Below are positions 1-29,890 of a stretch of DNA of 35,887 nt, piece by piece. This stretch comes from Trichosphaerium sp. ATCC 40318. Lineage: Eukaryota > Protista > Tubulinea. A program made the position numbers and the translations under genes. The stretch spans positions 1-35,887 of the forward strand of contig JALMLS010000396.1 in the NCBI GenBank assembly GCA_038496445.1, in the 5' to 3' direction. Each line of letters starts with the position of its first letter. Position 1 is the stretch's first letter. The notes below the pieces were generated by a model. That model saw only the letters and a list, made by a program, of their open reading frames with translations. It was not told where the DNA came from and ran no database searches.

Positions 1-1425
1 TTAACAATAATATTCTTTTAAAATAAATATAAAAATTAAAAACACTTTTAAATTAAGCAACATACTATAAACAAAGGTTTTTAATAATGCAGCAACACAC
101 ATTTATACATAAATTTAAACATTTATACGCAAAAAACTTAAAGTTTTTGGTATTTAAATAAGATTTGATATATATCATCAAAAAACTGTAATTTAATACA
201 CACAACATGGGTCTTCTCAAAGATTAGCCTGTTTAATTTGATATCTGTATCAAGATTCGACGCCATAAAGACTTTTTAACACAGTTAAAAATAGTATCCA
301 CACAATAAAAATGTACTATACGCAAACTCAAGTATATAATTCTTTTTTACTTTTTTTACGTTCTATGCTTGCTTTATTTCTTTTTTTTAAATTTAATATA
401 TATACATAACTATGTTTTTTTTCTTTTTTATTTTTTCTTTTATGAGTTTTTCCTTTTTTTTAATAAGGTGTTTTATGTTTTCAGTGCTTTTATTCTTCTT
501 AAATTTAAGAAGAATAAAAGCACTGAAAACATAAAACACCTTATTAAAAAAAAACCTCATTTTTTTTTTCTTTTTCTAAAAAAAAGAAAAAAAAAAAAAT
601 AAGGTTAAAAAAAAGAAAAATATTATACCCTTTGATCATTATTTTAAAATAATGATCAAAGGGTATAATATTTTTCTTTTTTTTAACCTTATTTAATAAA
701 TTTAAGCTACTCATGATGCTTATATTTAATACATTTAAACTGTATTTTAATTTTTGCTCTTTTTTTTTCAGAAATAACGAAAGAAATAAATAAAAAAAAT
801 ATATTTTTTTTATTATACTCTTTTTTTTTCAAAAATAACGAAAGAAATAAATAAAAAAAATATATTTTTTTTTTAATATACTCTTTTTTTCTTTTATTAC
901 TCTCGTTATTTTTTTTATTTTTTGTTTTACTTCTTTTTTTATTTTTTTTATTTTTTGTTTTACTTCTTTTACTTTTTTAACTTTTTTTTTATTTATTTCT
1001 TTTATTTTTTTTTTTGATCTAATTAAAAAATATATAATATAAGAAGGTATTAGTAATATAAAAAAAAATATCTTTATAATACCCTTTAATATTATAATAT
1101 GTCAATATAACTTTAAAAAAAAATAAAAGTAAAGAAATATATTTTTTATCAACAATATATACGATTCTTAAATCTTCTAATTTTACAAAATATATTCCAC
1201 CATACTTTTAAAAAAAAATCTCATAAATAAAAGTCTTATATCCTATAACTAAGTCAATATCTTATAGTATATATCTCATATTACGCATAAATCAACATGT
1301 TTTAATTATTTCTCACAAAAATATCTTTACATAATGCACTCAACTTAAAATATTTTCAAAAGACGAATAATAAAAAAAAAAACTTAAATAAATAAAAGCG
1401 TAATCTTCTTAATTTCACTTTCATA

Positions 1426-1871
1426 TTACTCAAATTTTTGTATCATATTCAGCTAATTTTTTTTCTTCTGCAGATAGCTTTCCCAATCTTTCTTTCCCTT
1501 CCTATATTTTGTTTTTTTACATCTCTATACCATCAGGACCATACATAAAAATTAATTCCCAAGAATATACTTTCTATTTTTTATAAATCTTTCTCAACTA
1601 TTTTATTACTCTACTTTTTATACTCAAAAATATTTAAGTTTCATTTTTCGCTTCTTTTTCTAAATTCACCTAATAATCTATTAATATAGGAACACCATAC
1701 AAAACATAACATAAGTATATTCGAACTTAAAATATGAGGCTGTCTTTTCACTGCATTAATTTATTTACTCAATATTCATAATATACTATTTTCTTTTATC
1801 TCAACGTTGGTTCCCATACCTATTAACCAATATAATGCACAAAATTATTTCTACTTTACGATAATTATCAT
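1426..1871 (-). CDS. rpl6: rpl6-like, mirror copy
   Basis: Reverse complement of 27187..27633 (one T shorter). Confidence 0.55.
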
Positions 1872-1873
1872 CC

Positions 1874-2059
1874 TTATTTTTGGCACCTAAATAACTTAGA
1901 GCGATCCAACAATTACTTTCCCACAAAAGTAACTAAATCCAAATAAAAAGACTCCTAAAATTTACATAACGACGCTTTACCAACCAAAATTAATTCTTCA
2001 ATAACCCTACCCTCTCTACGTCTACCTATAGGACTAAGCCTCGTCGTACTAATAACCAT
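1874..2059 (-). CDS. rps16: rps16-like, mirror copy
   Basis: Reverse complement of 26999..27184. Confidence 0.35.
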
Positions 2060-2646
2060 CTATATACCCACGTGGATATATATGTAATCAATCAGATAAA
2101 CTCTTATCAATGTCATTATCTTATTATAAAAGAATCAACGGCATAAAAACCAGCTCATTCAAGAGCTCACTCTCTTCAATATCTAATCAATCCAAACGTT
2201 TTTTGTATAATGTACAAATACATGCTTATAACACAAATCTTTTTATAAAGCCATAACGCAAAAATATATTTACAAATTATTATTTTGCAATTTATTAAAA
2301 AAAACTTAAATATACTATTTAAAATTTTTTTTAATAAAAACGTTACCTTGGTAGAAAAATTAAAATTAATTTTTCTTTTTCTAGTTCTTACCTTTTTCTA
2401 CACTATTAAGCAAAAAATTAAAAATCAATTTTTAATTTTTTTCATAAAGTTCTTTAAATACTTTAAAAATATACTCAACCAGAAGTTACACTTTCTAATA
2501 ATTAAGATATAGCCTAAACATTCCCTCAATTGTGTAGTTTCCTTCTTACCTTCTGCTTCTATGATGTAAACGACTCAATAACTGCAACATAGCTAAATCC
2601 CCTAAAATAAGTTTAATAAAACTAAAATTAATAAAATATCAAACAT
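2049..2646 (-). CDS. rps2: rps2-like, mirror copy
   Basis: Reverse complement of 26411..27009 (one base shorter in an A/T run). Confidence 0.45.
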
Positions 2647-2650
2647 TTTT

Positions 2651-3400
2651 TTATTTATATTGTAAACTCTAAATATTCTTATATGAAAATCTTCCGCTCT
2701 GTTTTTTTACGGAACTATTATATGTTCTTCTATGTTAAAATCTAAACTACAAGTGGATACACGACACTTTCCGTTTAGGGTACTTATTAAATAAAAACAT
2801 CACATACTAAAATCAAAAAGATAAAAATTGGTACATTAAAGTAAATCAACAACCAAACAACGTAAACGCTGCAACTTAAAATTAATTTACATGTAAATAA
2901 TTTTTGTCCTCATAATTTAAACTTAACATTTATATAATCTTACTGTATAATTTGGATGCCTTATACTACACCATTTAATAATAAAAACCACAAGATAAAA
3001 ACTTCGTGAATCATACATAGTATCCACAATATTTAATCTAAATACACTACCCCCAATCGACATTCTAAAAATTTAGAATTTGACCAACTACACTTTCCGA
3101 TTTGGCCTTGCTTTCTTATCATATCGCTTATACGCCTATGCGTAAGAAATTATAAAATAATAATAAACGTTGTAAACGTACGAAATACTCCTACGTTTTT
3201 TTCTCTCTTTTCTTGGATAATAATATCTATTCTATATACGAACCTATATTAGCATTTTGATCCGATATTCTCTTCAAATATCTAATACTAGATCTAGCAC
3301 AAATTGCCTGATGGATTTAACCTCACATATGATGTATTTGTCCTGTTAATCTACTTCTAATTGCTAAACTTTTTAACAGTATATTTTAAACTGTTCTCAT
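2651..3400 (-). CDS. rps4: rps4, mirror copy
   Basis: Reverse complement of 25657..26406. Confidence 0.77.
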
Positions 3401-3576
3401 TTATTTTTTTTTTTTTTTTTCAAGATAATCATTAAACATAGCAAAATCTAACTCTAATTGTTCTCTAAAATCTTCTAAAGTTCATTGAACAGATTCGCTA
3501 AATACATAAAAATTATTTAAAAGCACTATTTTAGTTTTTTTAAATAATTTTTCTAAAAAAAAAGGAATATTATTTA

Positions 3577-4686
3577 TTATTTTACTTTTTAATATTTTAA
3601 TTATTATAGTAGATCATGATCTACTACATACTATATATAAAACTAAAAACCTAAATAATAAATAATTAAGCTTTCATTAAATTACAAGATCAAGGATAAC
3701 GCATAGTTTCACCCGAACATACGCTAAATCAACTAAGTTACAAGCTAAAAACATACATATGTTTTTCCTATAATATCAAAATAAACCCTTTCAATTCACT
3801 ACGGCCCAAAAAACCAAGCCTAACAAACAACCTATGGCACAAGCTAAATGTAACAACCTAAATTTTTATTATAAACCAATTTTATCATACATAAAAAGGC
3901 AAAAAATACATTCTGGTTTTATTAATCTTGGCGTCACATAATGTTTGCCAAAATCATATTTTCATACATGTTGCATAAGATCATGAAAATACATATAACC
4001 ATAAACACCTATAACTAAAAAAACACATATAAATCTTTTATTAAAAAATATACACCAAAGCTACCGAATCTATAAATCCATCTCCTCTGTATTATTTGTC
4101 GACCAGTTTCATGTAATAAAATTAAATGCACAAAACTAAACCTAATAAAAAAAAGCTAAAAAAATAATGTAAACTAAAACATCTGTATAACATTTCATGA
4201 CTAAAAGAAAACCTCCCATAACAAAAGGAAAAATTTCTTCTTTCACCCTGGAAAACATCTATTAGATATAATATAATAATGGTAGCTCAATAGCTCATTT
4301 GACTCAAGGTAAAATATAACTAATAAAGCAGTAAATACATTACTAACAATACTAATACTCCTGACATTCATAAATGTGTCTAGGATATAAATAAGAACTA
4401 TAAACAATCCCCTTAGCATATGAATATAAACAACAAAAAAAAACATACAGCACCATGTACATGAGCTAATCTTAATCATCACCTTCGTAAACTTCACGCA
4501 TAATTACATTTAAAGACCTTCAAAATCACCTGCGTATATATTGCCGCTAATAATACACCCGTTAATATTGAATTAATAAAAAAATTAACGCTACCCACCA
4601 TAACTTCAATTATAACTTAAATTAGATGTGCTCTATAACCAATCCAAACTCATATGCTACTTTTGTAATTTATTACTTTTCCACAT
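3577..4686 (-). CDS. cob: cob, mirror copy
   Basis: Reverse complement of 24371..25480. Confidence 0.94.
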
Positions 4687-4694
4687 AACTGATT

Positions 4695-5870
4695 TTACTT
4701 AATTATTTCTATTATTTTTCCTTACCTACTGTATTTGTCCTTCTCTTATTGTAAATTGTAATTTTCATTTAACGCAACTTTAGACATCAACTTTACTCTA
4801 TTTTTTCATTTGCCCAGGTAAAATTACTTCATCCTCATTTAAAACCTTTATTGTCCCGTAACATTAGATGTTCTAAAAAAAAATTGAGGTTGAAAACAGA
4901 ACTAAATGGTTTTTTCTTCCTCCCTCTTTTCTTGTCAAAATATAGACTGCGCTCTAAATTCATTTTTAGGCACAACGCTTTTAAATCACATAAAACCATT
5001 CTCGTATAACTTGTTTTCTTTTTACACTTTTATTAAAACCCAACATTTTCACCCGCCATAGCATCGTTCATTATTTATGAAACATTTCTACACGTAACAT
5101 GTTGTTTTTATTACATCAGAACCTACCAATTCCAAATCTTGACACTTTTTACAATACCTTGTTCTATGCATCCGATACTACAGTACCTCGACCTGAATTG
5201 TATAAACATCTTCTATAGGCATTATAAACGATCATCTTTATTTCTAACTGTAAAGGTATTTTTTCATCTATTAGCGCATTAATTCTTTTACACTTTTATG
5301 CCATTTTCTGAAAAACCCTTTTCTTCCACTTCGTTCATAGCTCATGCGCCGATCCCACAGAGAAAGGTACATCTTCATAACATAAGTTTCTAAAAGCTCT
5401 AAGTTTCCAAAGATACTAAATCTTTTAAATTCGGGTCAATATAGCATCTAATTTATTAAAAAAAGCACCAAATTTTTAATACCTACTTGACTTATTAATA
5501 TTATATGTCCCTTGTTTGTTCTTGAGGACCATCTGTCAAGCTACTACTAAAATAACTCCGTCATCTGGATTGCTCCTATTATCATATTCTTCATAAAATC
5601 TGATGTCCTGGGCAATCAACATGTGTATAATGTCTGTTTCCGTTTCATATTCACATGTAATGCGTTTATAGTAATCCCACGCGCCTTTCTTCTGGAGTTT
5701 TATCAATTTCATCATAATTAAAATTTTAGTTCTGTATAAAACGATAATACCTGAGTTATTGCTGATGTTAACGTTGTTTACCATGATCTACGTGCCCTAT
5801 AGTTCTATTGTTACATGCGGCTTTACACGCTTAAAGACCTCTTTCCCCGTAGATTCTGCTTTAGCAACAT
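4695..5870 (-). CDS. tufA: tufA, mirror copy
   Basis: Reverse complement of 23187..24362. Confidence 0.95.
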
Positions 5871-5873
5871 ACT

Positions 5874-7800
5874 TTAACTAATTTTTTAAATTAAAACAAA
5901 ACAATCTGCAAACTCTTCAAAAAAGCATTTAATTTTTTTACATTTAACTTTACTGACGTTTTCTTATATTATCTTAAACCAATTTCTACCAAATATACTG
6001 TTTCTATACTTACTTTATGCATAATATTTTCAAAAGTAGCTACTTATTTACAGCAATATTATCTAAAAAACTTCAGATGCTGCAAACAAAGATAACAACT
6101 GATGATCTGTTGCATCGGCATTTTATTTTTTTGAACATCATTTGTATTAATCTTTGACCTCTATTATTAAATTTAAGGTAGCCTCATCTAAAGACGATCA
6201 AATTTAGCAAAATCTTCAACTCACGAAATTGAGCCAATTCTAATTTTAAATCTTTTGCTAAATATTCATCATTTTACTTTGAGCCATTGACCTACCCTAC
6301 TTACAGATAACCTAAATTAACAGCAGGTCTTACCCTTTTTTAAACAAGTTTGTATCTAAAACAATTTGTCCATCGTAATAGAAATTAAGTTTGTTGGTAT
6401 ATAAGCTGATACATCTCTTCTATAGTTTCTGCTATAGGTAACGCTGTTAAAGTTCTCCTAATCTCTCTACACATGTTCTCATTTTCATAGCGCGTTAAAC
6501 CACAACGCCATACAGCCCAAGATTCACTAATTTTGCGGATCTTTCTAATAAACGAGAATGCAAATAAAAAACATCCCAGGATAAGCTTCTCGTCCTGGAG
6601 GACGACCCAATAAAAGAGATATTTGCTATAAATATTAGCATGCTTACTTAAATCATCATATATAATTAAAGCATCCATACCCAATTCTCTTCAATATTCT
6701 CCTATAGATGTACTACATAAGGAGCTAAATATTGATAACCATTGCTGAACTTGCAGTTGAACATATTAAAGTTACATTCTTCAACAATTTTTCATTTTTA
6801 ATAACATGCTATTCTTTTAACGTTGACATTTTTTGACCTATAGCTACATAAATAGCATTAAAAATACATTTACTGCACCAAATCTTGGCTTTTTCTTCTA
6901 AATTCTCTACTTTGATGTATTATGTATCTAAACAAATTGCTGTTTTTCTGTCTGTCTATCTCCCAAAACTAATTCCCTTTGACTTTTCCTATTGGTACAT
7001 AGAATCTATTGCTTTAACACAGTTTCCAAAGCTTGAGCTATTGATGTTCTTCTTATAATCCTGGAGCTTTTTTCTCAACATATTTAAATTAACTTGCTGA
7101 TAATAATAATTATGATGTTTCACATTGTTTGTAATCTGTAAAATTTTGGATCCTTATGTATTGTAAAAATCTATTTTTATTGATGTACAATTTCTTTACT
7201 ACCAAACTGACCTAATAGATTTCCAACAAACAAAATAAAGGCAAATTTCTTTTGTTTGTTGAGTTTGCATTATAAAGGTAAAACTAAATTACCAGCAATA
7301 AACCATTTGTACTTTGAATAATATTACAGTATTTACTATATGCTTATTCTTCTCCTATAAAGATAAGAATCCCATGTAATATATTCCCATTCCTTAAAAC
7401 TCTAAAAATTTTTCGCCAAATCATCAATTAGTCCATCATACTCAGAATAACTCTCTATAGAATCAAAAACTACAACCCACTACAATTTATATATTTTTTA
7501 ACAACTAAAGATTGACTAAACCATCACCTATAAAACCACTTTTATACGCGCAACGTTCACATTTAAAACTTTACCAGTTCAAAATAAAAAATCACCTATT
7601 TGAATACTATATCTCGTCCGAAAACTAAGATACTATTCTCTTAGCTTCTAAGTTCATAACTACTCCTAAAGTCCTCCATCTGCAAAAACTACTCGCTCAC
7701 CAGCACTCACTTTCATGATTCTATAGCATAAACTACTCATCTGCAACGTAGCTTACTTACCTAAACCATTAAAATGATAAGAAATTACATGATCGTCCAT
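5874..7800 (-). CDS. atp1: atp1, mirror copy
   Basis: Reverse complement of 21257..23183. Confidence 0.95.
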
Positions 7801-7826
7801 TTATTTTATATTTTTTTAATTTTTTT

Positions 7827-8073
7827 AACCGTAATAATATTAAGCCTTTCCATTTTATTAACGCTTTAAAACTATAAAGAACCAAACCCTCCAACAATAT
7901 TGCTCAGTTCAAATATAATAATAAAACAAAAAATAAAATAGTACGTCAGCTAAAATAACTTCTAAACTAAAAAATTCTAATAAGCATAAAATTAAATACA
8001 AAAAAGAGTTACAAAAAAACACATGATAAATTTAATATTCCTCTTCTAATAATAAAATTATACTAAATGACAT
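7827..8073 (-). CDS. nad4L: nad4L-like, mirror copy
   Basis: Reverse complement of 20984..21230. Confidence 0.45.
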
Positions 8074-8079
8074 TTTGTT

Positions 8080-8251
8080 TAACTAGACATACAATTTATT
8101 TACTTGTACATATTTAACATTAATTCATACCTCAATTTTGTTATTTCTGAGATACCTTTAATATAAAAAAAAACACAAAAAATATACTATAAATAAAGTA
8201 AAAAATAATAAAATAATTTCTGTTGAAAAAATAAAATATCTATTGAATCAT
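8080..8251 (-). CDS. atp8: atp8, mirror copy
   Basis: Reverse complement of 20806..20977. Confidence 0.65.
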
Positions 8252-8319
8252 TATATTTTTTCTTTTTTTTTTTATCACTGTAACTTAACACTATTGATAA
8301 ATATAAAGCATATTAAAAA

Positions 8320-9339
8320 CTAAATCACTTTTATTCCATTCAAAAAGTCTGTTCACATATAAACACCTATAAATAAAACTATCAAATAACATCTACAAAA
8401 TGTCAATACAATTAGCAAAAGCAAATCCCTGTAAATACGTGCACTATAACCATATGTAGATATCGACCAAACATACGCACAAAAAAATTCACCGGCTATT
8501 ACATGACAACCATGTAAACCTGTTAACATAAAGATGTACTTCCAAAAACCCGCTGGTTATACTAAAAGGTAATGTAAAATATTCTATCACTGATTAAATA
8601 AAAATAATAATCCAAAAACCAATGTTACCACATAACCCAAATAACATGATAATATTCACGGCGGCTACAGCCATAGTAGCTACCTGACAAATTAAACTGA
8701 ATATAATAATAATAAAGTATTTATCAAAGGTATACAAAAGGCGCTGGGCTACTTATACCACAACCTGGTCATTACCTCCTATTCTAGCTACATAACACAA
8801 ACATAATAAAAAAAAGCGCAAAAAAAGGTACAAAAAACATCATTCCGCAACTAAAAAAAAAATAAAACATATTGTAAGTTTCTTGCTATTACACTGTTCT
8901 ATGACCTAAAATCACTCTCTATCTAAATCACGCCACCAACCATAAACTGATAATAATGACACATTGTACCAAATAAAAATAAACCAGGGCACAATTTTGA
9001 CAATGCATCCACGTAATAGCCCTAAAAATAAAAGTAACGTCCATAACTTAAAAAAAAAGGCCATGGCTAGCATCTACATAATGCCAACGATGCTTTGACG
9101 ATTTTTTATTTTATCACTATATTGCAAATTATAATGTCGTAAACCCCTTTATAATAGTTATTAACAATATCTAGTTTTATTTCTAAATTTATATATCAAA
9201 TAAATAAATCATAAAAAAAATAAATAATATGTCGACATAAAAGCGATATTTCTATATATGCGTTAATATCAACACTTATTAATAATTTTAAATATAATGT
9301 AAATATTTTAAATTCTTCCGCAAATAACCTTTTATCCAT
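8320..9339 (-). CDS. cox3: cox3, mirror copy
   Basis: Reverse complement of 19718..20737. Confidence 0.9.
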
Positions 9340-9375
9340 CAACTTTTTCACTTTTTTATTATAAATTTAAATAAT

Positions 9376-10074
9376 TTAATTAGATAAAAAATCGCTTAAA
9401 TAAAGCACATTAACATTAAGAAAATATAAGCTGTATTGCCGCAACTATAAATTCTAAAATCATAATTAAAACGTCACTACGATTAAAATTGTTTGTAAAT
9501 ATAAGCTATACTCGCATAAAACACTGCGCATAAACATTTAATAATGCGTGCCAGCTAATATATTAGCCATTAAACGCACATGTAGACTAACTACCTTAAA
9601 ATATAAGATACAAACTCTATATTATTAAAATAAAAAGAATTACGCTTTTATTTCCGGTACAAATAAAGTAATAAACCAGTTCGTTTAAAATAAACCTTAA
9701 TAAACCTGCATATATTCAAATTACGCTGCAAAAAAAAATGCAACTGCCCAAAAACTTGTAATTGATAATCTCCGGGTATCATTGCTATTATATTTAAAAA
9801 CAAAATCTCGCGAAAACAACAAAAATGAAAGGTTTAATATTCTTTTATTTTTATTATTTAAAAAACAACCGTTAATTTCCCAGTTACTCCCCAACAAAAT
9901 TAACTATAAATTCAAAAAAACTAAAAGAACCATCCCTAAAACACTTAATTTAAAAAAAATAAACCGTAAAAAAATCCATAAAAAAAAAAACAACTTACCA
10001 AAATAAAAACCAACTTGAAAACACAAACAACCTAAATTATTTACTACGGGATCAAAATGCTCCAAAACTGACAT
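9376..10074 (-). CDS. atp6: atp6, mirror copy
   Basis: Reverse complement of 18983..19681. Confidence 0.9.
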
Positions 10075-13538: not shown

Positions 13539-14666
13539 CCTCTTATTTCAACGTTTTTTATTTCTTACTTTTTTTTTTGTTGTTAAATATACTTCTTTAT
13601 TTTTTATTTTTATATTTTGCCAGCTTTTAGTGGTAATAATAGACGCTTGTTTTTTATTTCCTATTAGTATTATTATTTTTTTCTTTTTTTTTTTTCTTTT
13701 TTTTTTGCTTTTGATTTTAATTTTTTTATTTTTATTGTTATTTTTTGCAAGTTTATTTCTTTTTTTTCTTTTATCTGATCTTTTTCACAATTTATTAATT
13801 TTACTTTTATTTTTTTTACCCTTTTTTTTGTTTTACTTTTATAAAGCTGCGTATTAAACAAAAATAAATGTAAAAGCTCACGCGATTTCTGTTCGAAAAA
13901 AAAAGAGTAATATAATCTTATTAAGTTATATTACTCTTTTTTTTTCGAACTCTTTTTAAATACCCATCTTATTTAATTTTTTGTTAATATTACTAAACTA
14001 GTACCATAACTTCTTTTATACATTAATTTTGTCCATAAACTTATAACGCCATAATTTTTTAAAAATCACGCATTCATATTTATATTATTACGCGATTTTT
14101 TACCTCTATTTTTTTTTATATTAAACCTACACCTTTTATTAATCTATTAATTTATTATAAAACATGTATGTATATATTGTTTTAATTTATCTAAACTTTA
14201 TATTTATAATCACTTCTCGCTAAATTTAACCTTCACGGCTCTTTTTTAAAAAATTAAACCTACATTTGTTTGAAAAATATTTCCTATCTTTTATTTAAAA
14301 TAAATTAGATAATATACTCTTTTTTCTCTTCTTTTTCAAAATCTATCCACTAAACGCATTGACCTATTTCACGCATGCGTTTAGTGGATAATACACTTAC
14401 CTTTACTAAAATAATTTGAATATACCAAAGGCAATTTATTTTTGATAAACTTTTATATTTAAATTTTTTACACTAAACTTTCTTTTAATACCCTAAAATA
14501 AACAAAAGATCGGCTTTTAAGATACCTATAGGTATCTTAAAAGCCGATCTTTTGTTTATTTTAGGGTATTAAAAGAAAGTTTAGTGTAAAAAATTTAAAT
14601 ATAAAAGTTTATCAAAAATAAATTGCCTTTGGTATATTCAAATTATTTTAGTAAAGGTAAGTGTAT

Positions 14667-16952: not shown

Positions 16953-17025
16953 TCGGGAGTGGAGTATAGGTTAGCTCGCAGGCTCATGACCCTTGAGGAG
17001 ATCGGTTCGAGTCCGGCCTCCAAAA
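16953..17025 (+). tRNA. trnM: Initiator tRNA-Met(CAU)
   Basis: Loop ctcatga. One G duplication (cag[g]g/ccctt) restores the three G-C pairs typical of initiator tRNAs. Confidence 0.85.
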
Positions 17026-17031
17026 AAAAAA

Positions 17032-17101
17032 CAGGGTATAACTTAAAAGGTAGAGTGTTGGCTTTGGAGCCAAAAGTGCAGGTTCGAGTCTGCTATCCAA
17101 A
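17032..17101 (+). tRNA. trnP: tRNA-Pro(UGG)
   Basis: ttggc/tttgga/gccaa arm with a 6-nt loop (needs tttgg[g]a). T-stem one base short. Acceptor pairs 1-2 mismatched. Confidence 0.88.
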
Positions 17102-17104
17102 AAA

Positions 17105-17175
17105 GGGCCAATAGTTTAAAAGGTAAAATAGAAGTTGTCGGCCTTTCAGATATCGGTTCAAGTCCGATTTGCTCG
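17105..17175 (+). tRNA. trnD: tRNA-Asp(GUC)
   Basis: gaag[g]/ttgtcgg/ccttt arm. Acceptor gggccaa/ttg[g]ctc with G discriminator. Confidence 0.88.
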
Positions 17176-17204
17176 TTATTAAAGGTAGTTGGTGTAAAAA
17201 CAAG

Positions 17205-18910
17205 TAAAAGTTAGCGTATGATTTTGCGCTGAGTGAGTGCTAATGTGGACTTAACACATGCAAGGTAATATTCTATATTATTTAGAATGCCCGTAAGGTG
17301 AGTATTAATCGATATTAGCTAGCTATGTTAAGCAAAATAAGCTTAATAAAGTAAATAGATTTATAATTTTTATATAAAGAGATACGAGTTTTTGACACAT
17401 AGGAATGTATCGTAAATGATAAGTAGTAGGTTTAAGGTAAAGCTTACCTAGCCGAAGACCGTACCAGGACTGAGAGGGTAAACTGGCACAGCGGGGAGAG
17501 ATGACCCGAACGTTAAGGCGCAGCAGTGAGGGATTTTGGACAAGTTTAATGCACGATCCAGTTATGCCGTGTGGCTAAATTTAGCACAGTTGTAGAAAGA
17601 TTGTTCGCTTAAGAAGGCAGAGTCGAAAGTCAGTGAAATAATGATAATAGTGATAGTAATTATTGGAAAGGCTGTCTAACTTCGTGCCAGCAGTCGCGGT
17701 AACACGGGGGCCCAAGTGCTACTCATCTTGATTGGTGTAAAGGGAAGTAAACTGTCCATAAAGTTTTGAGTAAAAAACTCGGGTTGATCTGAGGATAACT
17801 CATTTAACTTATGTCTTTGTATTTTTTTGAGTACGTGGTATTATAAATTAGGAGTAGAATTCTAAGATTTATAAGACCATCATGCGGAGCAATCGCGTAC
17901 TGTGAAAGAATAGACGTTAGTAATCGAAAGCGTAGGGAGTGAAAAGATTAGATACCCTTGTAATCTACGCTGTGACCGATGGATATTTGGCGCTGGACAT
18001 CTAGGAGGTTTTAAATCCTTTGTGACTTGTACCGGTGGTGAAGCTTACGCGTAAATATCTCACCTGGGGAAATATGTCGCAAGATGTAAACCTAAGAAAT
18101 TGGCGGAGTGTATTACCAGCAGTGGATCATGTTGATTATCTGATGATCCGCGTTTAATCTTACAAACCTAGATATATGCCCCAAGATAAAGTTATATTTA
18201 TAAGTAGTAGGTTTTTTTCAAATTTATATTAAAAATTGAGAGAATACTTTAGGTCCAGGTGTTGCATGGCGCCGTCAGCTCGTGTAGTGATATGTCGCCT
18301 TACTGGATAAACGGGCGTACCCATGAAATTGAGTGAAAATAATAATACAATTTAGCAAATCATGCAATATGATAGTTAGTAGTGATGACGACTGGTCGTC
18401 ATGGCCTTAATGGTTTGGCTTCAAATGTGATACAACGTTGGTACAACAAGATGCTATTCATAAGTGATTAGCGCTAGTCTGATAAAACAATCTCTTGTTC
18501 GGATATTCCCTGAAATAGGAATATGAAGATGAATTGCTAGTAATCGCGGATCATCACACCGCGTGAATACTTGCCTGCGCTCGTACATACCGCCGTGGCC
18601 CAGCGAAAGCTGGGTGGCTGGACGTAGTTTAAATTAATCAAAAAAAAAATCAAAAAAGTTTGTATTTTAAAGTAGAGTTTTCTTAGGAAAAGCAACTTTT
18701 TATGAAAAATAAACTAAATAGGGCAAGAAATAAAAAGATAATTTAAATTTAAATTATCTTTTTAACGTAAGCTAAAAGCGGTTGAGTAAATCTCCTGCTT
18801 TAAAAGATAATTAAAAAGTAGAAAAGATAAAAAAAAGGACTATAAAACCTATGTCAGCGATTGCTGTAACTCGTAACAGGGTAGTGTATCGGAAGGTGTA
18901 ACTGATAAAA
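17205..18910 (+). rRNA. rns: Mitochondrial small-subunit rRNA
   Basis: Universal motifs: taacacatgcaag, gtgccagcagtcgcggtaa, gattagataccc, gtcagctcgtg, gaattgctagtaatcgcg, tcgtaacagggtag. Ends approximate. Confidence 0.97.
18731..18764. repeat. 34-bp perfect palindrome inside the SSU rRNA expansion
   Basis: taaaaagataatttaaatttaaattatcttttta. Confidence 0.9.
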
Positions 18911-18982
18911 TTAAAAAAATTTAAAGGGTTATTTTAAATTTTATTTTAATAAAAAAATAAAAGAAGTAAAGAAAAGAGAAAG

Positions 18983-19681
18983 ATGTCAGTTTTGGAGCAT
19001 TTTGATCCCGTAGTAAATAATTTAGGTTGTTTGTGTTTTCAAGTTGGTTTTTATTTTGGTAAGTTGTTTTTTTTTTTATGGATTTTTTTACGGTTTATTT
19101 TTTTTAAATTAAGTGTTTTAGGGATGGTTCTTTTAGTTTTTTTGAATTTATAGTTAATTTTGTTGGGGAGTAACTGGGAAATTAACGGTTGTTTTTTAAA
19201 TAATAAAAATAAAAGAATATTAAACCTTTCATTTTTGTTGTTTTCGCGAGATTTTGTTTTTAAATATAATAGCAATGATACCCGGAGATTATCAATTACA
19301 AGTTTTTGGGCAGTTGCATTTTTTTTTGCAGCGTAATTTGAATATATGCAGGTTTATTAAGGTTTATTTTAAACGAACTGGTTTATTACTTTATTTGTAC
19401 CGGAAATAAAAGCGTAATTCTTTTTATTTTAATAATATAGAGTTTGTATCTTATATTTTAAGGTAGTTAGTCTACATGTGCGTTTAATGGCTAATATATT
19501 AGCTGGCACGCATTATTAAATGTTTATGCGCAGTGTTTTATGCGAGTATAGCTTATATTTACAAACAATTTTAATCGTAGTGACGTTTTAATTATGATTT
19601 TAGAATTTATAGTTGCGGCAATACAGCTTATATTTTCTTAATGTTAATGTGCTTTATTTAAGCGATTTTTTATCTAATTAA
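18983..19681 (+). CDS. atp6: ATP synthase subunit a (cryptogene)
   Basis: MSVLEHFD start. Reconstructed IEFVSYI..VVSLHVRLMANILAGHALL and LEFIVAAIQAYIF. Multiple single-base gaps. Confidence 0.93.
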
Positions 19682-19717
19682 ATTATTTAAATTTATAATA
19701 AAAAAGTGAAAAAGTTG

Positions 19718-20737
19718 ATGGATAAAAGGTTATTTGCGGAAGAATTTAAAATATTTACATTATATTTAAAATTATTAATAAGTGTTGATATTAACGCATA
19801 TATAGAAATATCGCTTTTATGTCGACATATTATTTATTTTTTTTATGATTTATTTATTTGATATATAAATTTAGAAATAAAACTAGATATTGTTAATAAC
19901 TATTATAAAGGGGTTTACGACATTATAATTTGCAATATAGTGATAAAATAAAAAATCGTCAAAGCATCGTTGGCATTATGTAGATGCTAGCCATGGCCTT
20001 TTTTTTTAAGTTATGGACGTTACTTTTATTTTTAGGGCTATTACGTGGATGCATTGTCAAAATTGTGCCCTGGTTTATTTTTATTTGGTACAATGTGTCA
20101 TTATTATCAGTTTATGGTTGGTGGCGTGATTTAGATAGAGAGTGATTTTAGGTCATAGAACAGTGTAATAGCAAGAAACTTACAATATGTTTTATTTTTT
20201 TTTTAGTTGCGGAATGATGTTTTTTGTACCTTTTTTTGCGCTTTTTTTTATTATGTTTGTGTTATGTAGCTAGAATAGGAGGTAATGACCAGGTTGTGGT
20301 ATAAGTAGCCCAGCGCCTTTTGTATACCTTTGATAAATACTTTATTATTATTATATTCAGTTTAATTTGTCAGGTAGCTACTATGGCTGTAGCCGCCGTG
20401 AATATTATCATGTTATTTGGGTTATGTGGTAACATTGGTTTTTGGATTATTATTTTTATTTAATCAGTGATAGAATATTTTACATTACCTTTTAGTATAA
20501 CCAGCGGGTTTTTGGAAGTACATCTTTATGTTAACAGGTTTACATGGTTGTCATGTAATAGCCGGTGAATTTTTTTGTGCGTATGTTTGGTCGATATCTA
20601 CATATGGTTATAGTGCACGTATTTACAGGGATTTGCTTTTGCTAATTGTATTGACATTTTGTAGATGTTATTTGATAGTTTTATTTATAGGTGTTTATAT
20701 GTGAACAGACTTTTTGAATGGAATAAAAGTGATTTAG
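19718..20737 (+). CDS. cox3: Cytochrome c oxidase subunit 3 (cryptogene; conserved part starts ~19955, possible N-terminal extension from 19718)
   Basis: Reconstructed HRWHYVDASPWP, GWWRDLDRE, FMLTGLHGCHV, YWHFVDVIW (W=TGA). Confidence 0.93.
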
Positions 20738-20805
20738 TTTTTAATATGCTTTATATTTATCAATAGTGTTAAGTTACAGTGATAAAAAAAAAAAGAAAAA
20801 ATATA

Positions 20806-20977
20806 ATGATTCAATAGATATTTTATTTTTTCAACAGAAATTATTTTATTATTTTTTACTTTATTTATAGTATATTTTTTGTGTTTTTTTTTATATTAAA
20901 GGTATCTCAGAAATAACAAAATTGAGGTATGAATTAATGTTAAATATGTACAAGTAAATAAATTGTATGTCTAGTTA
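20806..20977 (+). CDS. atp8: ATP synthase subunit 8 (cryptogene)
   Basis: MIQ[L/I]D start (cf. MPQLD), one hydrophobic segment, then ISEITKLR (cf. ISxILKLR). Confidence 0.7.
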
Positions 20978-20983
20978 AACAAA

Positions 20984-21230
20984 ATGTCATTTAGTATAAT
21001 TTTATTATTAGAAGAGGAATATTAAATTTATCATGTGTTTTTTTGTAACTCTTTTTTGTATTTAATTTTATGCTTATTAGAATTTTTTAGTTTAGAAGTT
21101 ATTTTAGCTGACGTACTATTTTATTTTTTGTTTTATTATTATATTTGAACTGAGCAATATTGTTGGAGGGTTTGGTTCTTTATAGTTTTAAAGCGTTAAT
21201 AAAATGGAAAGGCTTAATATTATTACGGTT
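20984..21230 (+). CDS. nad4L: Probable NADH dehydrogenase subunit 4L (cryptogene)
   Basis: Short hydrophobic frame with R-x-N-I-L, FNF and TEAILL..LVL (cf. AESAIGLAILV). Confidence 0.5.
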
Positions 21231-21256
21231 AAAAAAATTAAAAAAATATAAAATAA

Positions 21257-23183
21257 ATGGACGATCATGTAATTTCTTATCATTTTAATGGTTTAGGTAA
21301 GTAAGCTACGTTGCAGATGAGTAGTTTATGCTATAGAATCATGAAAGTGAGTGCTGGTGAGCGAGTAGTTTTTGCAGATGGAGGACTTTAGGAGTAGTTA
21401 TGAACTTAGAAGCTAAGAGAATAGTATCTTAGTTTTCGGACGAGATATAGTATTCAAATAGGTGATTTTTTATTTTGAACTGGTAAAGTTTTAAATGTGA
21501 ACGTTGCGCGTATAAAAGTGGTTTTATAGGTGATGGTTTAGTCAATCTTTAGTTGTTAAAAAATATATAAATTGTAGTGGGTTGTAGTTTTTGATTCTAT
21601 AGAGAGTTATTCTGAGTATGATGGACTAATTGATGATTTGGCGAAAAATTTTTAGAGTTTTAAGGAATGGGAATATATTACATGGGATTCTTATCTTTAT
21701 AGGAGAAGAATAAGCATATAGTAAATACTGTAATATTATTCAAAGTACAAATGGTTTATTGCTGGTAATTTAGTTTTACCTTTATAATGCAAACTCAACA
21801 AACAAAAGAAATTTGCCTTTATTTTGTTTGTTGGAAATCTATTAGGTCAGTTTGGTAGTAAAGAAATTGTACATCAATAAAAATAGATTTTTACAATACA
21901 TAAGGATCCAAAATTTTACAGATTACAAACAATGTGAAACATCATAATTATTATTATCAGCAAGTTAATTTAAATATGTTGAGAAAAAAGCTCCAGGATT
22001 ATAAGAAGAACATCAATAGCTCAAGCTTTGGAAACTGTGTTAAAGCAATAGATTCTATGTACCAATAGGAAAAGTCAAAGGGAATTAGTTTTGGGAGATA
22101 GACAGACAGAAAAACAGCAATTTGTTTAGATACATAATACATCAAAGTAGAGAATTTAGAAGAAAAAGCCAAGATTTGGTGCAGTAAATGTATTTTTAAT
22201 GCTATTTATGTAGCTATAGGTCAAAAAATGTCAACGTTAAAAGAATAGCATGTTATTAAAAATGAAAAATTGTTGAAGAATGTAACTTTAATATGTTCAA
22301 CTGCAAGTTCAGCAATGGTTATCAATATTTAGCTCCTTATGTAGTACATCTATAGGAGAATATTGAAGAGAATTGGGTATGGATGCTTTAATTATATATG
22401 ATGATTTAAGTAAGCATGCTAATATTTATAGCAAATATCTCTTTTATTGGGTCGTCCTCCAGGACGAGAAGCTTATCCTGGGATGTTTTTTATTTGCATT
22501 CTCGTTTATTAGAAAGATCCGCAAAATTAGTGAATCTTGGGCTGTATGGCGTTGTGGTTTAACGCGCTATGAAAATGAGAACATGTGTAGAGAGATTAGG
22601 AGAACTTTAACAGCGTTACCTATAGCAGAAACTATAGAAGAGATGTATCAGCTTATATACCAACAAACTTAATTTCTATTACGATGGACAAATTGTTTTA
22701 GATACAAACTTGTTTAAAAAAGGGTAAGACCTGCTGTTAATTTAGGTTATCTGTAAGTAGGGTAGGTCAATGGCTCAAAGTAAAATGATGAATATTTAGC
22801 AAAAGATTTAAAATTAGAATTGGCTCAATTTCGTGAGTTGAAGATTTTGCTAAATTTGATCGTCTTTAGATGAGGCTACCTTAAATTTAATAATAGAGGT
22901 CAAAGATTAATACAAATGATGTTCAAAAAAATAAAATGCCGATGCAACAGATCATCAGTTGTTATCTTTGTTTGCAGCATCTGAAGTTTTTTAGATAATA
23001 TTGCTGTAAATAAGTAGCTACTTTTGAAAATATTATGCATAAAGTAAGTATAGAAACAGTATATTTGGTAGAAATTGGTTTAAGATAATATAAGAAAACG
23101 TCAGTAAAGTTAAATGTAAAAAAATTAAATGCTTTTTTGAAGAGTTTGCAGATTGTTTTGTTTTAATTTAAAAAATTAGTTAA
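21257..23183 (+). CDS. atp1: ATP synthase F1 alpha subunit (cryptogene, large internal insertion)
   Basis: Reconstructed [88 protein letters not shown]. Confidence 0.97.
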
Positions 23184-23186
23184 AGT

Positions 23187-24362
23187 ATGTTGCTAAAGCA
23201 GAATCTACGGGGAAAGAGGTCTTTAAGCGTGTAAAGCCGCATGTAACAATAGAACTATAGGGCACGTAGATCATGGTAAACAACGTTAACATCAGCAATA
23301 ACTCAGGTATTATCGTTTTATACAGAACTAAAATTTTAATTATGATGAAATTGATAAAACTCCAGAAGAAAGGCGCGTGGGATTACTATAAACGCATTAC
23401 ATGTGAATATGAAACGGAAACAGACATTATACACATGTTGATTGCCCAGGACATCAGATTTTATGAAGAATATGATAATAGGAGCAATCCAGATGACGGA
23501 GTTATTTTAGTAGTAGCTTGACAGATGGTCCTCAAGAACAAACAAGGGACATATAATATTAATAAGTCAAGTAGGTATTAAAAATTTGGTGCTTTTTTTA
23601 ATAAATTAGATGCTATATTGACCCGAATTTAAAAGATTTAGTATCTTTGGAAACTTAGAGCTTTTAGAAACTTATGTTATGAAGATGTACCTTTCTCTGT
23701 GGGATCGGCGCATGAGCTATGAACGAAGTGGAAGAAAAGGGTTTTTCAGAAAATGGCATAAAAGTGTAAAAGAATTAATGCGCTAATAGATGAAAAAATA
23801 CCTTTACAGTTAGAAATAAAGATGATCGTTTATAATGCCTATAGAAGATGTTTATACAATTCAGGTCGAGGTACTGTAGTATCGGATGCATAGAACAAGG
23901 TATTGTAAAAAGTGTCAAGATTTGGAATTGGTAGGTTCTGATGTAATAAAAACAACATGTTACGTGTAGAAATGTTTCATAAATAATGAACGATGCTATG
24001 GCGGGTGAAAATGTTGGGTTTTAATAAAAGTGTAAAAAGAAAACAAGTTATACGAGAATGGTTTTATGTGATTTAAAAGCGTTGTGCCTAAAAATGAATT
24101 TAGAGCGCAGTCTATATTTTGACAAGAAAAGAGGGAGGAAGAAAAAACCATTTAGTTCTGTTTTCAACCTCAATTTTTTTTTAGAACATCTAATGTTACG
24201 GGACAATAAAGGTTTTAAATGAGGATGAAGTAATTTTACCTGGGCAAATGAAAAAATAGAGTAAAGTTGATGTCTAAAGTTGCGTTAAATGAAAATTACA
24301 ATTTACAATAAGAGAAGGACAAATACAGTAGGTAAGGAAAAATAATAGAAATAATTAAGTAA
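23187..24362 (+). CDS. tufA: Elongation factor Tu (cryptogene)
   Basis: Reconstructed [30 protein letters not shown][K/R]ARGITIN, RHYTHVDCPGH, QMDGVILVV, NKLD, SGRGTVV, FTIREG. Confidence 0.97.
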
Positions 24363-24370
24363 AATCAGTT

Positions 24371-25480
24371 ATGTGGAAAAGTAATAAATTACAAAAGTAG
24401 CATATGAGTTTGGATTGGTTATAGAGCACATCTAATTTAAGTTATAATTGAAGTTATGGTGGGTAGCGTTAATTTTTTTATTAATTCAATATTAACGGGT
24501 GTATTATTAGCGGCAATATATACGCAGGTGATTTTGAAGGTCTTTAAATGTAATTATGCGTGAAGTTTACGAAGGTGATGATTAAGATTAGCTCATGTAC
24601 ATGGTGCTGTATGTTTTTTTTTGTTGTTTATATTCATATGCTAAGGGGATTGTTTATAGTTCTTATTTATATCCTAGACACATTTATGAATGTCAGGAGT
24701 ATTAGTATTGTTAGTAATGTATTTACTGCTTTATTAGTTATATTTTACCTTGAGTCAAATGAGCTATTGAGCTACCATTATTATATTATATCTAATAGAT
24801 GTTTTCCAGGGTGAAAGAAGAAATTTTTCCTTTTGTTATGGGAGGTTTTCTTTTAGTCATGAAATGTTATACAGATGTTTTAGTTTACATTATTTTTTTA
24901 GCTTTTTTTTATTAGGTTTAGTTTTGTGCATTTAATTTTATTACATGAAACTGGTCGACAAATAATACAGAGGAGATGGATTTATAGATTCGGTAGCTTT
25001 GGTGTATATTTTTTAATAAAAGATTTATATGTGTTTTTTTAGTTATAGGTGTTTATGGTTATATGTATTTTCATGATCTTATGCAACATGTATGAAAATA
25101 TGATTTTGGCAAACATTATGTGACGCCAAGATTAATAAAACCAGAATGTATTTTTTGCCTTTTTATGTATGATAAAATTGGTTTATAATAAAAATTTAGG
25201 TTGTTACATTTAGCTTGTGCCATAGGTTGTTTGTTAGGCTTGGTTTTTTGGGCCGTAGTGAATTGAAAGGGTTTATTTTGATATTATAGGAAAAACATAT
25301 GTATGTTTTTAGCTTGTAACTTAGTTGATTTAGCGTATGTTCGGGTGAAACTATGCGTTATCCTTGATCTTGTAATTTAATGAAAGCTTAATTATTTATT
25401 ATTTAGGTTTTTAGTTTTATATATAGTATGTAGTAGATCATGATCTACTATAATAATTAAAATATTAAAAAGTAAAATAA
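24371..25480 (+). CDS. cob: Apocytochrome b (cryptogene)
   Basis: Reconstructed PSNLSYNWSYG, YIHMLRGL, GYILPWGQMSYWA, KPEWYFLPFY. 3' end approximate. Confidence 0.96.
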
Positions 25481-25656
25481 TAAATAATATTCCTTTTTTT
25501 TTAGAAAAATTATTTAAAAAAACTAAAATAGTGCTTTTAAATAATTTTTATGTATTTAGCGAATCTGTTCAATGAACTTTAGAAGATTTTAGAGAACAAT
25601 TAGAGTTAGATTTTGCTATGTTTAATGATTATCTTGAAAAAAAAAAAAAAAAATAA

Positions 25657-26406
25657 ATGAGAACAGTTTAAAATATACTGTTAAAAAGTTTAGCAATTAG
25701 AAGTAGATTAACAGGACAAATACATCATATGTGAGGTTAAATCCATCAGGCAATTTGTGCTAGATCTAGTATTAGATATTTGAAGAGAATATCGGATCAA
25801 AATGCTAATATAGGTTCGTATATAGAATAGATATTATTATCCAAGAAAAGAGAGAAAAAAACGTAGGAGTATTTCGTACGTTTACAACGTTTATTATTAT
25901 TTTATAATTTCTTACGCATAGGCGTATAAGCGATATGATAAGAAAGCAAGGCCAAATCGGAAAGTGTAGTTGGTCAAATTCTAAATTTTTAGAATGTCGA
26001 TTGGGGGTAGTGTATTTAGATTAAATATTGTGGATACTATGTATGATTCACGAAGTTTTTATCTTGTGGTTTTTATTATTAAATGGTGTAGTATAAGGCA
26101 TCCAAATTATACAGTAAGATTATATAAATGTTAAGTTTAAATTATGAGGACAAAAATTATTTACATGTAAATTAATTTTAAGTTGCAGCGTTTACGTTGT
26201 TTGGTTGTTGATTTACTTTAATGTACCAATTTTTATCTTTTTGATTTTAGTATGTGATGTTTTTATTTAATAAGTACCCTAAACGGAAAGTGTCGTGTAT
26301 CCACTTGTAGTTTAGATTTTAACATAGAAGAACATATAATAGTTCCGTAAAAAAACAGAGCGGAAGATTTTCATATAAGAATATTTAGAGTTTACAATAT
26401 AAATAA
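25657..26406 (+). CDS. rps4: Ribosomal protein S4 (cryptogene)
   Basis: Reconstructed LECRLGVVVFRLNIVDTMYDSRSFISCG..LNGVVIRHPNYTV fits the S4 RNA-binding domain. N-terminal DLTG. Confidence 0.8.
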
Positions 26407-26410
26407 AAAA

Positions 26411-27009
26411 ATGTTTGATATTTTATTAATTTTAGTTTTATTAAACTTATTTTAGGGGATTTAGCTATGTTGCAGTTATTGAGTCGTTTACATCATAGAA
26501 GCAGAAGGTAAGAAGGAAACTACACAATTGAGGGAATGTTTAGGCTATATCTTAATTATTAGAAAGTGTAACTTCTGGTTGAGTATATTTTTAAAGTATT
26601 TAAAGAACTTTATGAAAAAAAATTAAAAATTGATTTTTAATTTTTTGCTTAATAGTGTAGAAAAAGGTAAGAACTAGAAAAAGAAAAATTAATTTTAATT
26701 TTTCTACCAAGGTAACGTTTTTATTAAAAAAAATTTTAAATAGTATATTTAAGTTTTTTTTAATAAATTGCAAAATAATAATTTGTAAATATATTTTTGC
26801 GTTATGGCTTTATAAAAAGATTTGTGTTATAAGCATGTATTTGTACATTATACAAAAAACGTTTGGATTGATTAGATATTGAAGAGAGTGAGCTCTTGAA
26901 TGAGCTGGTTTTTATGCCGTTGATTCTTTTATAATAAGATAATGACATTGATAAGAGTTTATCTGATTGATTACATATATATCCACGTGGGTATATAGAT
27001 GGTTATTAG
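26411..27009 (+). CDS. rps2: Probable ribosomal protein S2 (cryptogene)
   Basis: N-terminal GYILIIR and C-terminal LNEAG....D.DID...IDYIYP resemble the S2 motifs YIxxxR and EAxxLxIP..DTN..IDYxIP. Confidence 0.5.
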
Positions 27010-27184
27010 TACGACGAGGCTTAGTCCTATAGGTAGACGTAGAGAGGGTAGGGTTATTGAAGAATTAATTTTGGTTGGTAAAGCGTCGTTATGTAAATTT
27101 TAGGAGTCTTTTTATTTGGATTTAGTTACTTTTGTGGGAAAGTAATTGTTGGATCGCTCTAAGTTATTTAGGTGCCAAAAATAA
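26999..27184 (+). CDS. rps16: Possible ribosomal protein S16 (cryptogene, short)
   Basis: RREGRVIEEL (cf. RDGRxIExLG) followed by YVNF..L..W. Weak similarity. Confidence 0.4.
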
Positions 27185-27186
27185 GG

Positions 27187-27633
27187 ATGATAATTATCGT
27201 AAAGTAGAAATAATTTTGTGCATTATATTTGGTTAATAGGTATGGGAACCAACGTTGAGATAAAAGAAAATAGTATATTATGAATATTGAGTAAATAAAT
27301 TAATGCAGTGAAAAGACAGCCTCATATTTTAAGTTCGAATATACTTATGTTATGTTTTGTATGGTGTTCCTATATTAATAGATTATTAGGTGAATTTAGA
27401 AAAAGAAGCGAAAAATGAAACTTAAATATTTTTGAGTATAAAAAGTAGAGTAATAAAATAGTTGAGAAAGATTTATAAAAAATAGAAAGTATATTCTTGG
27501 GAATTAATTTTTATGTATGGTCCTGATGGTATAGAGATGTAAAAAAACAAAATATAGGAAGGGAAAGAAAGATTGGGAAAGCTATCTGCAGAAGAAAAAA
27601 AATTAGCTGAATATGATACAAAAATTTGAGTAA
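27187..27633 (+). CDS. rpl6: Probable ribosomal protein L6 (cryptogene)
   Basis: YIWLIGMGTNVEIKENSI.MNIG (cf. LxLxGVGYRA....LxLxLG) and C-terminal GIR......RKGKK. Confidence 0.6.
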
Positions 27634-28604: not shown

Positions 28605-29255
28605 GGAAAAACTCATAAAAGAAAAAATAAAAAAGAAAAAAAAACATAGTTATGTATATATATTAAATTTAAAAAAAGAAATAAAGCAAGCATAGAACGT
28701 AAAAAAAGTAAAAAAGAATTATATACTTGAGTTTGCGTATAGTACATTTTTATTGTGTGGATACTATTTTTAACTGTGTAAAAAGTCTTTATGGCGTCGA
28801 ATCTTGATACAGATATCAAATTAAACAGGCTAATCTTTGAGAAGACCCCTGTTGTGTGTATAAATACAGTTTCTATGATGATATATATCAAATCTTATTT
28901 AAATACCAAAAACTTTAAGTTTTTTGCGTATAAATGTTTAAATTTATGTATAAATGTGTAGCTGCATTATTAAAAACCTTGGTTATAGGTATGTTGCTAA
29001 ATTAAAAGTGTTTTTAATTTTATATTTATTTTAAAAGAATATTATTGTTAAGTATAAAAGGTGTAAGGCATTCAGTAATAGAAATAGGATATCAAAAAGA
29101 AAAGAAATATAGAGCATGGGAAAATAGCTGGTTGAACAGAAATAGAAATAAAAAATAGATTAAGGAAGCTTGGGAAAAGGAAGTTAAGGTTACCTATATT
29201 AAAAAAGCTGAGGAAATATCTATGAGGAGCTTTATAAAAAAGCAATGGATGAAGG

Positions 29256-29636
29256 ATGATAAAGATTATTTATAAATTATCGCAGCGCATGGTCATCCAG
29301 GAACTTTATGAAAATGACTCAAATAGATTATTGGGCAGATACAAAAAGAGAAAAGATAAGAAACAGAAAAAAAGAGAAAAAAGAAAAAAAGTGATAGTAA
29401 AAATATTGTCTTTTTTTTTTAAATCTATTAATTTTATATTTTTTAATTTTATAAAATTAATATTTTTATGTTTAAATAGATTTGATTTGTATGATTATTT
29501 ATTTTTTAATTTAGAAAAAAAAATGAAAAATAAAATAAAAAGATTTGAGCAAAGAAAAAAGAAAAAAGTAATATCTAAAGAAGAAAAAGAACAACTCGAA
29601 TGAGAATTAGCTGTATCAGGTAAAATTGAAGAGTAA
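29256..29636 (+). CDS. Orphan ORF segment (Lys-rich / hydrophobic / Lys-Glu-rich), probably part of a longer edited frame ~29080-29880
   Basis: Track ORF 29256..29603 extends to the TAA at 29634-36 when TGA=Trp. Coding-like sequence continues on both sides in other frames. Confidence 0.45.
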
Positions 29637-29890
29637 AAATGGATTATTTGATAATAAGGTAGAATTTTTTTCCTGAGTCCATACAAAATGCAACATTTTT
29701 ATTTGAAGAAGAATTGAAAAAAAAATGAAATAATATTAAATTTAAAAAATTAAAATTAAATAAATTTTTCTGGGAAGAAGAATATCATTTAAAAAAAAAG
29801 AGAATAGAAAATTGGTGAGGTTGGGATTATTATTATTTCAACAAAGAGGAAATAATTTTAAAGGTTTATTTAAAAAAGAAATAAGAAAAG

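Follow-up and report, generated by a model that had tools for sequence, protein, structure and literature searches.

Mitochondrial cryptogenes of an amoeba, probably Trichosphaerium, with densely and evenly spaced missing bases that are very probably regained in RNA as copies of a neighbouring base

The window analysed here is a 35,887-nt stretch of DNA, contig C318, from a eukaryotic assembly of 70.3 Mb in 642 contigs that also set the scope of the assembly searches, and the range studied in it is 18983-27633. The contig is AT-rich, its coding strand has G in strong excess over C, and a mitochondrial small-subunit ribosomal RNA (SSU rRNA) gene and a tRNA cluster are present on it. The stretch is mitochondrial DNA and carries atp6, cox3, atp1, tufA and cob together with reading frames that have no gene assignment (Table 1). 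No intact reading frame occurs anywhere in 18983-27633, the ten longest stop-free pieces of this range gave no Pfam match at E ≤ 1, and the Cytochrome_B family (PF00033) was not matched in six frames of the entire 70 Mb assembly. Overall, these genes are very probably mitochondrial cryptogenes in which one base per ~31 is missing from the DNA and is regained in the RNA as a copy of its neighbour, mostly G. The frames restored in RNA are translated with UGA as tryptophan (Trp).

The genes were read with a purpose-written frameshift-aware protein-to-DNA alignment under genetic code 4, in which two-base codons (a base missing from the DNA) and four-base codons (an extra base in the DNA) were allowed. 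The tufA gene aligned to Escherichia coli TufA with a score of 802, with 38 missing-base events, or about one per 30 nt, and with no extra-base event. The cob gene, aligned to five alphaproteobacterial cytochromes b that had been obtained by a scan for the PEWY pattern, showed 29-33 missing-base and 1-4 extra-base events, and atp1 aligned to E. coli AtpA with a score of 681, identity at 182 of 319 codons, 23 missing-base events and again no extra base. A first-pass annotation made from the sequence had claimed that conserved genes here densely lack bases, always in the -1 direction, and both claims are borne out by these counts (38 events in tufA, 29-33 in cob and at least 23 in atp1, with extra bases confined to the cob alignments). 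Its count of 12 missing bases in tufA 23250-23600 was reproduced exactly by the alignment, and the individual sites that it had named, at 22109 (Walker A), 23252, 23278 (GKTT), 23493, 24754, 25147 (PEWY) and 19989, were all recovered. Its count of six in atp1 22000-22135 fared less evenly: the alignment finds 4 events there, and it undercounts in this gene, since the RNA has 13 insertions in 21920-22312. The whole of atp1 probably spans ~21290-23105. At 22529-22640 it holds an insertion of ~19 codons relative to E. coli AtpA, which contigs of other organisms in the public runs described below skip (joints 22529 to 22640). The atp6 assignment is a tentative reading of sequence motifs. In cox3 the motif HRWHYVDAS(P)WP contains the site agc[c]ca tgg at 19989, and the motif LTGLHGCHVIAG lies at 20501-20701.

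Table 1 Features of the studied range and of its mirror arm, with positions in the window
Feature	Position	Strand	Basis or remark
atp6 cryptogene	18984..19690 (approximate limits)	+	MSVLEHFDP start and ANILAGH motif, readable only by switching frames
cox3 cryptogene	19960..20705 (approximate limits)	+	Motifs HRWHYVDAS(P)WP and LTGLHGCHVIAG; motif-level basis
atp1 cryptogene, aligned part	21969..23028	+	E. coli AtpA residues 126-468
tufA cryptogene	23213..24356	+	E. coli TufA residues 3-393
cob cryptogene	24362..25437	+	Alignment to five alphaproteobacterial cytochromes b (PetB)
Edited transcript over reading frames without gene assignment, downstream of cob	25383..26667	+	X6 contig
Further edited stretch	26993..27134	+	X11 metatranscriptome contig
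Mirror copy of the studied range 18983-27633	1424..10074	-	Left palindrome arm
Natural short hairpin, contig fold-back point	14498..14559	.	Same ~56 nt palindrome in contigs C291 (three times) and C369

Contigs of four public runs, taken from Logan, were compared with positions 21900-27600 of the window: X6, guessed to be RNA; X11, a cDNA RNA-Seq metatranscriptome of another study; X1; and X2, of a third study and guessed to be DNA. The RNA contigs of two independent studies match the window DNA at ~99.8 % and carry only single-base insertions. An X6 contig of 3111 nt over 22397-25411 (3015 nt of DNA) has 96 gaps and 6 substitutions, another of 1372 nt over 25383-26667 (1285 nt of DNA) has 40 single-base insertions and 4 substitutions, and a third has 16 gaps over 21900-22426. 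An X6 contig of 3510 nt reaches ~3 kb upstream of 21900. From X11, a contig with 1647 of its 1650 nt aligned over 23864-25459 (1596 nt of DNA) has 51 gaps and 2 substitutions, and a contig over 26993-27134 (142 nt) has 4 insertions. Within atp1, insertions in the RNA contigs number 13 over 21920-22312, 10 over 22287-22724 and 16 over 22707-23168. Together the edited contigs span 21900-26667 and 26993-27134, with an insertion density of ~1 per 31-32 nt, which falls within the one per 25-35 nt that had been estimated from the DNA. In the listed X6, X11 and X1 pieces, a few short high-mismatch pieces from other organisms being left aside, the RNA is longer than the DNA by one base for every gap (96/96, 51/51, 40/40, 21/21, 16/16, 13/13, 10/10 and 8/8), so every change is a +1 insertion, and there are no deletions and no dinucleotides.

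The RNA and the protein alignments agree closely. In 23190-23885 the tufA alignment places 21 events and the RNA contig has 21 insertions. RNA-verified insertions of G were located in tufA at 24083 and 24109 and in cob at 25119, 25147, 25166, 25198, 25236, 25268, 25300, 25334 and 25405, with one insertion of A at 25382, and all ten cob sites were recovered by the alignment at a distance of 7 nt or less. The X2 contigs follow the DNA: six of them are identical to the assembly, without gaps over ~2.4 kb in which the RNA would, by the measured density, hold ~75-80 insertions, and the X2 contig over 27138-27420 is colinear with the DNA. Edited and unedited forms are both present in X1, which is probably the source sample, and in X6 and X11 the edited form stands at full depth at nearly all listed sites, in contigs that drop rare variants. 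A 44-nt edited stretch of cob was absent from the 70 Mb assembly on either strand with up to 3 mismatches, and its unedited counterpart was found, within the assembly, in C318 only. Near the end of cob, X1 contigs start with 15 non-encoded A's just upstream of 25459 and 25467, which may be an artefact of priming or mark where a transcript ends.

The insertions in RNA, the colinear X2 contigs and the lack of an edited DNA copy in the assembly together exclude assembly error, an intact copy elsewhere and ribosomal frameshifting, and they uphold the first-pass reading of the missing bases as insertional editing and not as consensus error. Homopolymer deletions left in a long-read consensus might have been suspected if the assembly is the published Trichosphaerium draft, which was assembled with Canu from Nanopore and PacBio reads of REPLI-g amplified DNA, and the contig, probably a fold-back chimera, shows 1-nt offsets between its arms towards the contig end. 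This account is given a negligible probability, since Illumina reads were used for three rounds of polishing of the published assembly, the X2 contigs of an independent study are identical to the assembly that holds the window, the arms match each other perfectly (100 %) over 12117 nt, most sites are a single G and not a run, and the same bases are missing in two divergent relatives known from other runs. That the genes are dead pseudogenes or nuclear copies, with the RNA coming from intact genes elsewhere, is scarcely credible; the broken frames are all that speaks for it, and against it stand RNA-DNA substitutions of only ~0.2 %, the absence of an edited DNA copy from the assembly, and shifts that all run in one direction at sites conserved, under clear protein-level constraint, in three lineages. 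Programmed ribosomal frameshifting is known in a few mitochondria (Perkinsus, birds, turtles), and its restoring the frames at translation is just as improbable here, because the RNA contigs themselves contain the extra nucleotides. A reverse-transcription artefact was also considered and was rejected on the evidence of the RNA and DNA contigs.

The identity of the inserted bases was checked base by base in the 12 best-supported of ~160 insertion rows. In all 12, the insert matches the next encoded base, which is G in 11 and A in one: seven sites go from G to GG, three from GG to GGG, one from GGG to GGGG and one from AAA to AAAA. Thus, in this sample, G makes up ~90 % of inserts, neither U nor C is inserted, exactly one base is added each time, and 7 of the 11 G sites consist of a single encoded G, as the first-pass annotation had proposed when it described inserts that duplicate a neighbour, mostly G and often turning G into GG. 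Sites of C and A insertion were inferred from the DNA at 19989 and 23278. A T follows the doubled G at 10 of the 11 sites, a preference that is most simply put down to codon usage (GGT, TGG-TAT) and not to a signal. The duplication rule rests on these RNA rows and on one site in cob, at 24608, where relatives can be compared.

Several points weigh against this explanation. That X6 is RNA and that X2 is DNA are both no more than guesses, and Logan contigs drop rare variants, so that the efficiency and timing of editing are unreadable from them. Exceptions to the duplication rule and the share of G are poorly bounded by 12 rows out of ~160. A test by homology alone, in which two-base codons were completed with copies of a neighbour, gave this rule no higher score than nine scrambled rules or a rule of non-copies only; the copy rule permits fewer distinct codons and the placement by alignment is loose, so the result speaks neither for nor against the rule. 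Sites placed by alignment in tufA can lie 7-13 nt off (for example 24102, against 24109 in the RNA). The lone-G sites, 7 of the 11, are left without explanation by classical homopolymer slippage.

The codon table was examined in cob, where in-frame TGA stands opposite conserved Trp at 24449, 24576, 24687, 24751 and 24768 in the alphaproteobacterial alignment, and a further in-frame TGA lies at 25366 between RNA-verified sites. The TGA codons at conserved Trp positions show that UGA reads as Trp, so the code assumed in the first-pass annotation holds at five positions. The one tRNA-Trp gene seen, at 16799-16870 (+), has the anticodon CCA, despite the use of UGA for Trp in cob; decoding of UGA would need editing or modification of the anticodon, a second tRNA elsewhere or an imported tRNA. 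Several of the tRNA genes in 16720-17176 (+), mirrored at 11880-12337 (-), have mismatches in the first one to four pairs of the acceptor stem, a pattern like that of 5' tRNA editing, which occurs in Acanthamoeba among others. One G is missing from the conserved GGUUCGA of the T-loop in the tRNA gene at 16720-16786, an indirect sign that tRNAs may be edited too; for mRNAs, editing is directly shown by the RNA contigs.

The sites are evenly spaced. RNA-verified sites in cob follow one another at intervals of 28, 19, 32, 38, 32, 32, 34, 48 and 23 nt. The coefficient of variation of these intervals is 0.26 and that of the 38 alignment-placed sites in tufA is 0.40, compared with 0.96 for sites placed at random; the evenness of the tufA sites was not reached in any of 20000 random placements, and for the largest gap p = 5e-5. 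Relatives were reached by a protein search with the stop-free frame 24560-24811, which returned just two short frames, from the DNA of the relatives L008 (Logan SRR22824304) and L009 (Logan SRR28262571); a search for homologous proteins with 22367-22669 and a scan of metagenome contigs with a cob pattern that fits the edited as well as the unedited sequence gave no match. Both relatives have the gene order atp1-tufA-cob and the G excess of the window, and each has 34 two-base codons in tufA, mostly at the residues affected in the window. All three tufA genes can be aligned without an internal indel over 1144 nt, with an identity of 72-76 %, and an offset scan preferred offset 0 in 93 of 93 windows for all three pairs. 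As the three-way alignment is free of indels, all ~38 tufA sites are conserved. A single clean difference of 1 nt was seen in cob, at 24608: the window reads GCT-GTATG, L009 reads GCAGGCATG and L008 GCAAGTCTT. The site is lineage-specific, with GG encoded in a relative and just one G in the window, which is what the duplication rule predicts. Overall, L008 and L009 are ~70-76 % identical to the window, and a third relative, ~87 % identical, is seen as a 1600-nt contig in run X2 over 23266-24866.

The closest known system is that of the heterolobosean amoeba BB2, in whose mitochondria Yang et al. (PMC5421314, 2017) described ~475 single-base insertions genome-wide in mRNAs, rRNAs and tRNAs, 84 % of them G and all beside an identical encoded base. 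Both systems use solely single-nucleotide insertions that equal the adjacent encoded base, with G dominant (84 % in BB2 and 11 of the 12 listed here); in both, the frames of nearly all genes are repaired, no guide-like sequences were found, and the mitochondrial assemblies contain large inverted repeats. The differences are that the window is ~4 times denser, at ~1 site per 31 nt, against ~475 sites per ~70 kb of unique sequence in BB2, where the SSU rRNA has 18 in 1654 nt (PMC5421314); that tufA is absent from the BB2 mitochondrial genome and present here; and that neither regular spacing nor cross-species conservation of sites was reported for BB2. Mitochondrial tufA is known from the tubulinean Vermamoeba. 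The first-pass annotation had taken such editing to be undescribed at the scale of a whole genome, but the BB2 paper states the same rule genome-wide, so the rule is not new and that claim of novelty was overstated. In full-text literature searches, base-copying editing was described in no organism besides BB2, and no paper on Trichosphaerium mitochondria was returned; the published Trichosphaerium genome paper never mentions mitochondria. The window thus represents a second case of BB2-type editing, probably, on circumstantial evidence, in the amoebozoan Trichosphaerium and probably independent of BB2 in origin. What is new here is the even spacing, the conservation of sites in tufA and cob, the G/GG turnover site in cob and the evidence for UGA as Trp.

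Other editing systems resemble the window in part. In paramyxoviruses, G is added to transcripts of the P gene at one slippery A(n)G(n) tract, in variable number and with partial efficiency. The likeness lies in the addition of G beside encoded Gs during RNA synthesis; the difference is that here exactly one base is added at ~30 sites per kilobase, and with 7 of the 11 listed G sites single and the insert always one base, homopolymer stuttering of this kind is not what is found. In kinetoplastids, U is inserted or deleted post-transcriptionally, with cutting, insertion and ligation directed by small antisense guide RNAs. Such guides would explain a precise choice of sites without a local motif, and small RNAs lay outside the sampled data, but a mechanism of this type is very unlikely here: there is no U among the 12 listed inserts and no deletion at all, a guide RNA needs no identity between insert and neighbour, the edited 44-nt cob stretch has no match on either assembly strand, antisense included, with up to 3 mismatches, and the authors of the BB2 study likewise found no guides (PMC5421314).

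Myxomycete editing (Physarum, Didymium; PMC3285571) shares with the window its density, mRNAs that cannot be read from the DNA, the lack of a known local motif and, probably, membership of the Amoebozoa. It is possible, though we consider it improbable, that the window shows a homologue of the Physarum process, in which nucleotides are added co-transcriptionally without a template and the copying of the neighbour comes from a factor's choice of nucleotide. The density of 1 per 31 nt is Physarum-like, editing in Physarum is co-transcriptional and without a site motif (PMC3285571), the host is probably an amoebozoan as Physarum is, most G sites lie outside runs, and arcellinid COI also seems to be short of bases (PMC4807447). 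Physarum, however, inserts mainly C, usually not a neighbour copy, after a purine-pyrimidine pair, along with dinucleotides and with a bias towards third codon positions, whereas the 12 inserts listed here are all neighbour copies, 11 of them G, all single bases and often in Gly GGN codons, with no C and no dinucleotide among them; moreover, no protein of the Physarum machinery is known for comparison. The case of the arcellinid testate amoebae, in which Oliverio et al. (PMC4807447, 2015) inferred the 'missing' bases of Nebela COI to be C or T, had been mentioned in the first-pass annotation, and correctly so. Arcellinid COI is alike in its clade-specific single-base gaps in a mitochondrial gene of Tubulinea, read as insertional editing, and differs in that only 7 positions in 669 nt are affected, the bases are C or T, and the editing was inferred without RNA or a duplication rule.

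For the neighbour-copying insertion preferred here, one mechanism would account for the identity of the inserts: at marked sites, the transcribing mitochondrial RNA polymerase may read one template base twice, a step given roughly an even chance, and an insert produced in this way would always equal its neighbour. With a lone G at the majority of sites, the pattern is not that of classical slippage on runs. The even spacing may in turn reflect an exclusion zone of ~15-20 nt round each site at near-saturating density, for which the chances again appear about balanced. A broader proposal, that the base doubling of this amoeba, the C insertion of myxomycetes and the gaps in arcellinid COI derive from one ancient amoebozoan apparatus, polymerase-based and co-transcriptional, is speculative and is held to be doubtful; if it were true, sites in this lineage would be near saturation, the ~31-nt spacing would be the footprint of the apparatus, and BB2 would be convergent.

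The structure of the contig requires separate comment. The arms 2412-14528 and 14529-26645 form a palindrome that is 100 % complementary over 12117 nt with a spacer of 0 nt, centred at 14528/14529, and the match runs on, with 1-nt offsets, to ~274/28784. As 1424-10074 mirrors the studied range 18983-27633, the two copies are not independent sequence. Contigs C291 and C369 also contain the ~56 nt hairpin of the fold-back point, but on one side of it they run on into different sequence (their blastn matches to the window stop at 14498/14559), and C291 has a second inverted junction, a non-symmetric one, in which window position 24348 is joined to 20631 reversed. The 14.5 kb palindrome fold-back is most simply read as a chimera of whole-genome amplification, and is probably not a native structure. 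The C318 sequence is also found in marine metagenomes. To the right of the palindrome, ~7 kb of the window (28785-35887) holds lysine-rich low-complexity frames without a recognisable gene, and ten pieces from 28-36 kb gave no Pfam match.

Insertional editing by neighbour copying has so far been published only for BB2, a single lineage that looks uncultivated. The second case is ~4 times denser, probably belongs to another supergroup, and occurs in a culturable marine amoeba for which a nuclear genome assembly and transcriptomes exist, which makes it a practical system in which to search for the machinery, for example by a comparison with BB2 and Physarum of the mitochondrial RNA polymerase and its partners, as encoded in the nucleus. 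The almost complete conservation of sites at 24-28 % nucleotide divergence, together with their even spacing, places new constraints on any model of the process, and the finding bears on how 'irremediable complexity' spreads and becomes locked in. Since standard annotation finds no genes here, similar mitochondrial genomes have probably been discarded as unannotatable or as low-GC contamination.

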